The notes under the pieces: generated by a model
The model's database searches: none
What the model saw: the letters and a program-made list of their open reading frames with translations, nothing else
What the model was told of the DNA's origin: nothing
DNA from: Haliotis cracherodii
Lineage: Eukaryota
DNA: 64,000 nt
Assembly: GCF_022045235.1 (NCBI RefSeq)
Contig: NW_027266298.1
Location: 1,550,001 to 1,614,000, forward strand
Reading direction: 5' to 3'
Shown: positions 26,696 through 26,920 of the stretch, piece after piece
How the letters are laid out: every line of letters starts with the position of its first letter
How positions within the stretch are numbered: the first letter of the stretch is position 1
Program-made: the position numbers and the translations under genes

Positions 26696-26920
26696 GGGGG
26701 GAGACCCGAAAGTCACACGGTTGCCTAGGCAACCGATGCCCCACCGTCGACCTAAAAAGTTCAAAAAAGGTAAAAGGGGGGAGACCCGAAAGCCACACAG
26801 CTACTAATGTAACTGATGCCCCACCGTCGACCTGAAAAGTAGAAAAGGGGGGAGACTCAAGAGCCACACGGTTCAAGGACCGATACCACCCCGTAGACCT
26901 GAGAAAAGAACATGGTAAGC
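26696..26920 (-). repeat. Three tandem copies of the acceptor plus RNA motif (26696-26753, 26776-26833, 26847-26900)
   Basis: Each copy reads Y-tract-YAG|GTC NAC GG(T/G)G(G/T)G GYA T hairpin TGT GRCTY T..G TCTCCCCCC, with different hairpin sequences. Confidence 0.8.

Follow-up and report, generated by a model that had tools for sequence, protein, structure and literature searches.

For the rDNA-specific LINE R2, the answer to the question of how the element is expressed is a ribozyme. LINEs that lie in small nuclear RNA (snRNA) genes pose their own form of this question, namely how proteins are made from the transcript of an snRNA-type promoter. The closest described element is Keno, a Tx1-clade LINE specific for U2 snRNA genes (Kojima and Fujiwara, 2004, cited through PMC4494074 and PMC4640811); as a U1-targeting element, PMC4640811 lists Dada-U1 alone. 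No 5′UTR motif of the kind presented here is described in the full text of PMC4494074 where it concerns ribozymes, and PMC4640811, where its full text concerns ribozymes, promoters, and splicing, describes neither such a motif nor an acceptor-like signal.

The window analyzed here, a 64,000-nucleotide stretch of the Haliotis cracherodii genome (contig NW_027266298.1, positions 1,550,001 to 1,614,000), contains nine minus-strand matches to U2 snRNA (Rfam, gathering threshold), eight of which are 3′ parts of U2 preceded by an A-rich tail. Between the U2 parts lie long minus-strand open reading frames (ORFs) with Exo_endo_phos endonuclease, reverse transcriptase, and zf-RVT domains (Pfam), each of these ORF2-type frames has a separate ORF1 upstream of it, and a 5′ fragment of U2 is found just upstream of each element. 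Together, these pieces identify the window as an array of tandem U2 genes, nearly all of them interrupted by Keno-type LINEs of the Tx1 clade. Like Keno, the host elements combine an ORF1 with an ORF2 carrying APE endonuclease, reverse transcriptase, and zf-RVT, are inserted in the 5′ third of U2 near the GUAGUAUCU stretch, and meet the gene at their 3′ junction through poly(A), and on these features they belong with Keno and the Tx1 clade. They differ from Keno in that the 5′UTR motif is present also in elements inserted in U1 genes. Some elements stand directly behind the poly(A) tail of another, joined at a retained AGTATCT target (L067:2380-2490, L071:4190-4296, and L079:2430-2531), which shows that new elements have repeatedly inserted, head to tail, into the leader that a resident copy had taken from U2. 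The long minus-strand element between 500 and 17884 is split by plus-strand ORFs (11115-15670), probably a nested insertion of an unrelated element.

The ORF1 proteins, exemplified by the frame at 32530-33693 (minus strand), share a conserved N-terminus (MAY..A.NAGPIPE) and an invariant, RRM-like-looking block that ends in a CCHC knuckle (CLRC..LGH.R..C), as seen in the ORF1 alignment. ORF1 has no match in Pfam, its relatives are annotated as uncharacterized proteins in H. cracherodii, H. asinina, and Patella caerulea, and an ORF1 profile finds no relatives in viral and prokaryotic genome collections.

The motif itself is roughly 57 bases long and, in all 11 of its window copies, sits in the 5′UTR of a Tx1/Keno-type LINE that splits a U2 gene. 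The first-pass annotation of this DNA had reported 11 copies upstream of ORF1 in runs of one to three, and all of them are found in place on the minus strand, including one triple (26696-26900) and one double (47636-47762). The 3′ core of the motif alone gives nine matches against 0.03 expected from shuffles, and within the element UTR the motif lies 36-290 nt from the 5′ end. The triple and its surroundings are laid out first below, followed by the remaining copies, with covariance model scores given in bits.

28012-28193, minus strand: 3′ part of an interrupted U2 gene (Rfam), behind the poly(A) tail of that unit's LINE insertion
27015-27038, minus strand: U2 snRNA 5′ fragment (nt 1-24, a partial U2 match) upstream of the motif triple at 26696-26900
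26901-26940, minus strand: splice-acceptor-like context ahead of the first copy of the triple, a pyrimidine tract with CAG at its end
26847-26900, minus strand: motif copy 1 of the triple, the most diverged (62.9 bits)
26776-26833, minus strand: motif copy 2 of the triple (74.4 bits)
26696-26753, minus strand: motif copy 3 of the triple, nearest ORF1 (75.1 bits), with its RNA 5′ end at 26753
26673-26675, minus strand: ORF1 start codon (GAC AUG GC), 20 nt after the last copy of the triple
17828-17884, minus strand: motif copy whose leader could alternatively pair over 8 bp with GUAGACCU, an extended form of the helix drawn in the first-pass annotation
20869-20924, minus strand: motif copy of an ORF1-only element, with S1 as GAG-U-GGG/CCCCUC, a compensated change from G-C to A-U
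33705-33765, minus strand: motif copy (76 bits), identical to 40580-40640
40580-40640, minus strand: motif copy, identical to 33705-33765
47636-47692, minus strand: motif copy, downstream member of the tandem pair (81.6 bits)
47706-47762, minus strand: motif copy, upstream member of the tandem pair (80.7 bits)
50807-50865, minus strand: motif copy of an ORF1-only element, with an H2 loop of 6 nt
57905-57963, minus strand: motif copy (80.8 bits) whose C-run directly abuts the ORF1 AUG (spacer 0)

Comparison of the copies points to an 8-nt single-stranded leader, AGGUCNAC, ahead of a compact, unknotted three-way junction. This nested junction is the best-supported structure on the sequence evidence, rather than the pseudoknot closed by an AGGUC:GRYYU helix that had been drawn at first. 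In the copy of the triple nearest ORF1, for which the minimum-energy fold is the three-way junction, the parts follow one another in the RNA as listed here.

26746-26753, minus strand: leader AGGUCGAC
26739-26745, minus strand: 5′ strand of the closing stem S1
26716-26738, minus strand: hairpin H1
26715, minus strand: single U
26703-26714, minus strand: hairpin H2
26702, minus strand: single N
26696-26701, minus strand: 3′ strand of S1, the C-run

In S1, the G-run behind the leader pairs with the terminal C-run around one bulged pyrimidine, and the strands are seen as GGGUGGG/CCCCCC, GAG-U-GGG/CCCCUC, GUGAGG/CCUCAC, and GAGUGG/CCACUC. Strands taken from the same copy give a summed duplex energy of -260, versus -208 ± 8.8 for swapped strands, with none of 5000 permutations as low. 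The first-pass annotation had proposed this pairing, which stands with strong covariation, but as a nested closing stem and not as part of a pseudoknot. Its report of a covarying inner hairpin holds in full, with double-sided changes in nine of nine pairs of the long, variable H1, which also takes in two pairs, C-G and A-U, from what had been read as the linkers CAU and UGU. H2 is formed by GRYY pairing with a downstream RGUC over a loop of 4-6 nt. At its fourth pair, 26 sequences have C-G, 11 have U-A, and 7 have U-G, and none has C-A or leaves the position unpaired; the change from C-G to U-A is found inside one closely related lineage (L075 versus the window copy at 50807), and the copy at 26847-26900, with H2 as GGCU-CUUG-AGUC, has U-A as its fourth pair. 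Only 0-1 unpaired bases lie between the junction helices. The junction as a whole comprises 19 pairs with 89.8% of cells paired and 13 pairs changed on both sides, giving a covariation score of 0.394 versus 0.194 in shuffles (0/500) and 0.04-0.11 in slid controls. RNAalifold arrives independently at the same three-way junction, which is also the minimum-energy fold in 8 of 11 representatives. Because thermodynamic z-scores run only from -0.03 to -2.9, which is an unremarkable stability, the case for the structure rests on covariation and not on stability. The comparison defines the fold more closely than the first reading did, and it argues for a cis-acting RNA domain, maintained by selection, in the 5′UTR of Tx1/Keno-type LINEs in U1 and U2 genes.

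What becomes of the AGGUC:GRYYU helix is less simple. It can pair in most copies (90.8% paired), yet none of its pairs has changed on both sides, 5 of the 45 distinct sequences contain a mismatch in it, and an A·C mismatch breaks it in the AGAUC subgroup of U1-array copies. The first-pass annotation, in proposing it, had missed its rival H2. Both helices use the same GRYY and are therefore mutually exclusive. In most families the leader:GRYYU pairing spans 5 bp, and in one clade (window 17828, L078, L074, L069, and L070) it could reach 6-8 bp. Since the helix is so widely pairable and can be extended in one clade, a two-state arrangement keeps a place, in which GRYY may pair either with the leader or with RGUC.

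That the motif is an unrecognized structured RNA, as first proposed, is supported by its strong covariation, its copy number in the genome, its presence in a second organism, and the outcome of the Rfam search, in which U2 was the only family to score, both on the window (gathering threshold) and on four stretches that contain the motif (E<=10). ARAGORN predicts no genes in the window and recognizes no tRNA-like cloverleaf or T-arm there. The first-pass annotation had also judged that the motif does not fit the HDV, hammerhead, twister, or pistol cores, and the models concur. Neither HDV nor HDV-like Rfam models match the window at the gathering threshold or the four stretches at E<=10. On those stretches and at that E-value, the models for hammerhead, twister, twister-sister, pistol, hatchet, and hairpin ribozymes are also without a match. 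These searches bear on the proposal of a new self-cleaving ribozyme, cut at or just before the leader, that would free the element RNA from the snRNA co-transcript by the same logic as in R2, a site-specific LINE that is likewise co-transcribed with a host gene. The strongly conserved leader would suit such a role and, if the AGGUC:GRYYU helix forms, the RNA runs from the 5′ strand of that helix through the G-run, the hairpin, the 3′ strand of the helix, and a linker to the C-run, as in P1-P2-P3-P1′-J-P2′, so that the pseudoknot would have the HDV-like order of P1 and P2 with a putative cut at its 5′ edge. P1 of HDV-like ribozymes is a helix of 6-7 bp that starts at the cleavage site and is nested with P2. 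However, the junction is nearly fully paired, its strands of 0-1 nt vary between families, and the conserved unpaired core expected of a ribozyme is absent. The hairpin at the position of P3 is 9-11 bp long with tight, variable loops of 3-7 nt and hence offers no L3/P1.1, in contrast to HDV-like ribozymes, where a short P3 of 3 bp has an L3 loop that forms P1.1 and where a conserved catalytic C context and an Rfam match are found. Furthermore, no genomic copy begins at the motif, and a ribozyme would leave the branch-point-like motif and pyrimidine tract ahead of the leader unexplained. The proposal is weakened by these observations, and we regard it as very unlikely.

Flaviviral exonuclease-resistant RNAs (xrRNAs) occur duplicated, which the tandem copies of the motif recall. 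By analogy, a pseudoknotted C-run and G-run around the leader could block 5′-3′ decay, leaving a stable RNA that starts just before the junction. The motif and the flaviviral and plant-viral xrRNAs have in common a small junction or pseudoknot, an adjoining 5′ single strand, and a frequently tandem arrangement, and a pseudoknot topology is compatible with most copies. Against this, compensatory changes favor the unknotted junction, no sequence or model match is found (Rfam at E<=10, in a release that may not hold every xrRNA family), there is no known decay intermediate, and trimming as far as the motif would remove the upstream UTR, which all copies have kept. An exonuclease stall of this kind is highly improbable.

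Likenesses to the host's own small RNAs have also to be weighed, and from them the motif could be read as a relic of an snRNA 3′ domain (U2 stem-loop III or U1 stem-loop 4), acting as a mimic behind an Sm-site-like U-tract or having no function. In the U2 covariance model, the upstream UTR aligns weakly with the region around the Sm site, and the motif of one family aligns with stem-loops III/IV. The end of U1 (stem-loop 4, a UUCG loop, and a UCUCCCC strand) has a likeness in the 3′ half of the motif. Upstream, a hairpin like stem-loop IIb and a UGAUUUUU element recur in the order of U2. Yet in Smith-Waterman comparisons of the motif with the abalone's own U1, U2, and 5S against dinucleotide shuffles, p is mostly 0.1-0.9; overall, the likenesses are not significant against shuffles (p about 0.02-0.9 per sequence, the sequences not being independent), and the tracts are C-rich, unlike Sm sites. 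An absence of function is itself unlikely, because the covariation shows present selection on the fold. Overall we give this origin very little credence. Beyond its first 24-41 nt, the 5′UTR shows the U2-like order as a CUCC-loop-GGAG hairpin (like stem-loop IIb) followed by the Sm-site-like element (window 57991-58117, minus strand, and the equivalent UTR of other families); none of these pieces is individually significant, and the whole UTR may descend from an old U2 copy with internal deletions. Directly behind the AG, the eight bases GUCUACGG equal the first eight of abalone 5S rRNA (window 17877-17884, the same position in other copies, and L081:1501-1508), a likeness that does not reach significance against shuffles and may be a coincidence.

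To follow the motif through the whole H. cracherodii genome, we built a covariance model from ten of the 11 window copies and used it in place of a loose pattern search, whose matches were mostly unrelated. The model finds about 60 copies, occurring singly, in pairs, or in threes, in the U2 array on C35, a second U2 array on C5, and the U1 arrays on C32 and C51, along with a few decayed remnants, and all are confined to such arrays or to remnants of such insertions. Between families, ORF1 falls to a median of 42% identity, and the motif keeps 74% nucleotide identity together with its architecture. In the U1 arrays, the elements are ORF1-only and about 1.6 kb long, carry the motif, and lie in tandem U1 genes, as at L061:931-2522 (G000:C32, about 1996930-1998520), with further such insertions at L062-L064 and L066 (C32 and C51). 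They have U1 nt 1 to about 29 upstream, and their poly(A) tail meets U1 at about nt 33. With Dada-U1 as the only entry of its kind in PMC4640811, a U1-specific relative of Keno may be unreported.

A second organism is represented by the metagenome contig FXBE01013215.1 (L083, 1-1369), which is absent from this genome and was retrieved by the ORF1 profile; a strict pattern of the motif has no matches in metagenome contigs. Its parts come in the same order as in the abalone: a U2 5′ fragment is followed by a short pyrimidine-rich tract with CAG at its end, by the motif (109-161; 43.5 bits with the covariance model named R2), and, 48 nt from motif to AUG, by an ORF1 of 32% identity, and the hairpin sequences are new yet still paired. 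Lineages that target U1, lineages that target U2, and a second organism have the motif in common, and it is specific to Tx1 LINEs that target snRNA genes. The structure is real and selectively maintained, and it is described neither in Rfam nor in the part of the literature that was searched. It is a candidate for a new Rfam family.

This pattern of conservation would suit a binding site, in which the leader on its junction is recognized by ORF1p (RRM-like and CCHC), by ORF2p, or by a host export or stability factor, and marks the RNA for packaging or retrotransposition. The leader is the only long conserved single strand and stays nearly invariant across families and in the second organism, even as ORF1 has diverged to about 42% identity. 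The helices are free in sequence and kept in shape, as is usual for RNAs recognized by proteins, and the ORF1-only elements retain the motif. R2 has a structured 5′ protein-binding motif, which offers a parallel. A protein site would, however, leave the fixed place just before the AUG and the acceptor-like flank unexplained, and we consider this role unlikely, though close in standing to the reading that we favor.

It is the flank upstream of the leader that suggests a different role. Every copy is preceded by a flank like that at 26901-26940, and the leader starts exactly at the AG of what looks like a canonical 3′ splice site. Pyrimidines make up a fraction of 0.80 of positions -18 to -1 versus 0.56 further upstream, 41 of the 43 distinct flanks have a pyrimidine ahead of the AG (C in 36, T in 5, and A in the other 2), and a YTRAY motif is present in 25 of 43 flanks versus 11.6 ± 2.8 in shuffles, mostly 16-24 nt upstream of the AG. 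In essence, a branch-point-like motif, a pyrimidine tract, and a YAG are found at the right spacing for a 3′ splice site. The first-pass annotation had suggested a splice switch, an IRES-like element, a new ribozyme, or an anti-Integrator signal, and of these four only the link to splicing gains support, of an indirect kind, from this enrichment, but a donor to go with it was not found. Between the snRNA start and the AG, no credible cis donor is seen (best scores of about -5.8 to +4.5 bits, mean -0.25), and donor scores in the U2-array elements are no better than shuffles on a rough 5′ splice-site matrix with approximate weights. The short U1-array elements have no more than about 36 nt of their own sequence ahead of the AG, which is too short for an ordinary intron. 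Spliced-leader trans-splicing in molluscs is not reported in the titles and abstracts of the literature searched. The upstream tract is present in all of the roughly 60 genomic copies, although reverse transcription of a spliced or cleaved RNA would leave a copy without it. The missing donor and the lack of a tract-free copy are the main weaknesses of reading the motif as a splice-acceptor-linked leader of ORF1, a reading that we favor over its rivals by a small margin and hold tentatively, as possible rather than probable.

Part of the acceptor-like look may, moreover, only reflect unstructured flanks, since pyrimidine richness goes on downstream of the fold. The spacer from motif to AUG measures 0-33 nt (0-30 nt in the first-pass annotation, which had placed the end of the motif close before the ORF1 AUG), with a median of 11 nt, and is 77% pyrimidine and 8% G. 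It usually ends in ACC or GCC, with ACC before AUGG in 13 of 33, and every genome copy is followed by the conserved ORF1 start ATGGC. With a G-poor spacer and a Kozak AUG right behind the fold, the IRES-like role that had also been suggested is possible. More broadly, the junction and its G-poor pyrimidine flanks could serve as a platform that recruits or positions the small ribosomal subunit at the ORF1 AUG, either directly or through a factor that binds pyrimidine tracts, and ORF1 would then be translated despite a leader that is snRNA-derived, structured, and sometimes AUG-bearing. The fold always lies 0-33 nt (48 nt in the metagenome contig) from an AUG in Kozak context, pyrimidine tracts flank it on both sides and separate the tandem copies, and tandem multiplication is tolerated. 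A precedent is R2, whose HDV-like ribozyme fold reportedly promotes initiation (Ruminski et al., 2011). Upstream AUGs number 0-3 per family, with several families carrying 2-3 and several none, and the stretch from motif to AUG is free of AUG in nearly all copies. Because 57 upstream AUGs are seen versus 79 expected and some families have none, this AUG burden is not decisive for internal initiation, and in the families without upstream AUGs plain scanning from the cap would be possible. Nor would a platform account for the YAG or for the constant distance of the branch-point-like motif, and we think this function somewhat unlikely, though a close rival of the acceptor-linked leader.

The reading of the motif as an acceptor-linked leader takes its starting point from the 5′ ends of the elements. 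They carry 5′ leaders derived from snRNA, some of which are old and diverged, and from these we infer that the template RNA starts in the snRNA gene, implying co-transcription from the snRNA promoter; the element behind the U2 5′ fragment at 27015-27038, for example, is presumably co-transcribed from that fragment. An internal promoter with its initiator at the CAG was considered and rejected, because every copy carries an upstream UTR and an snRNA-derived leader, which can be inherited only from a transcript that starts further upstream. The transcript would begin at the snRNA promoter and consist of a U2 or U1 5′ fragment followed by the element, and the motif would mark the boundary between this foreign leader and the ORF1 unit, serving as a gateway that turns an snRNA co-transcript into an ORF1 message. 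In such a scheme, the acceptor signals would recruit splicing factors, the stable junction six bases into the "exon" would fix which AG is used, and the choice of GRYY between leader and RGUC could hide or expose that AG. After processing, the junction would be the last structured element ahead of the AUG, where it could also act in translation.

A more unusual form of this idea, which we think unlikely, is that the competition between leader and RGUC constitutes a new RNA device by which a LINE driven from an snRNA promoter escapes the snRNA fate, whether through a conformational switch on an acceptor that is spliced to an unconventional donor, possibly in trans, through a self-cleaving fold, or through an exonuclease block. 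Were it true, each of the three options would give the ORF1 message a defined 5′ boundary. An element of about 57 nt with many natural compensatory variants also provides material for the study of snRNA versus mRNA fate, of unusual splicing, and of cap-independent initiation in molluscs.

Among known systems, the PTE-type cap-independent translation elements of plant viruses contain a G-rich bulge and a C-rich bridge that form a pseudoknot inside a branch. The motif resembles them in its branched fold, its pairing of G-rich with C-rich strands, and a placement fit to serve translation, and differs in that its G-run and C-run form the closing stem; the likeness is without a shown relationship. 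With the HDV-like ribozyme of R2, the motif shares its nature as a structured RNA in the 5′ region of a LINE, near the first ORF, and its setting in a LINE that would likewise be co-transcribed with a multicopy host RNA gene. In contrast to that ribozyme, the motif fold is unknotted and is sited inside the UTR rather than at the 5′ end. What occupies the place equivalent to the R2 ribozyme in these snRNA-gene LINEs is a different, well-defined fold, coupled, with no donor visible, to an acceptor-like signal.
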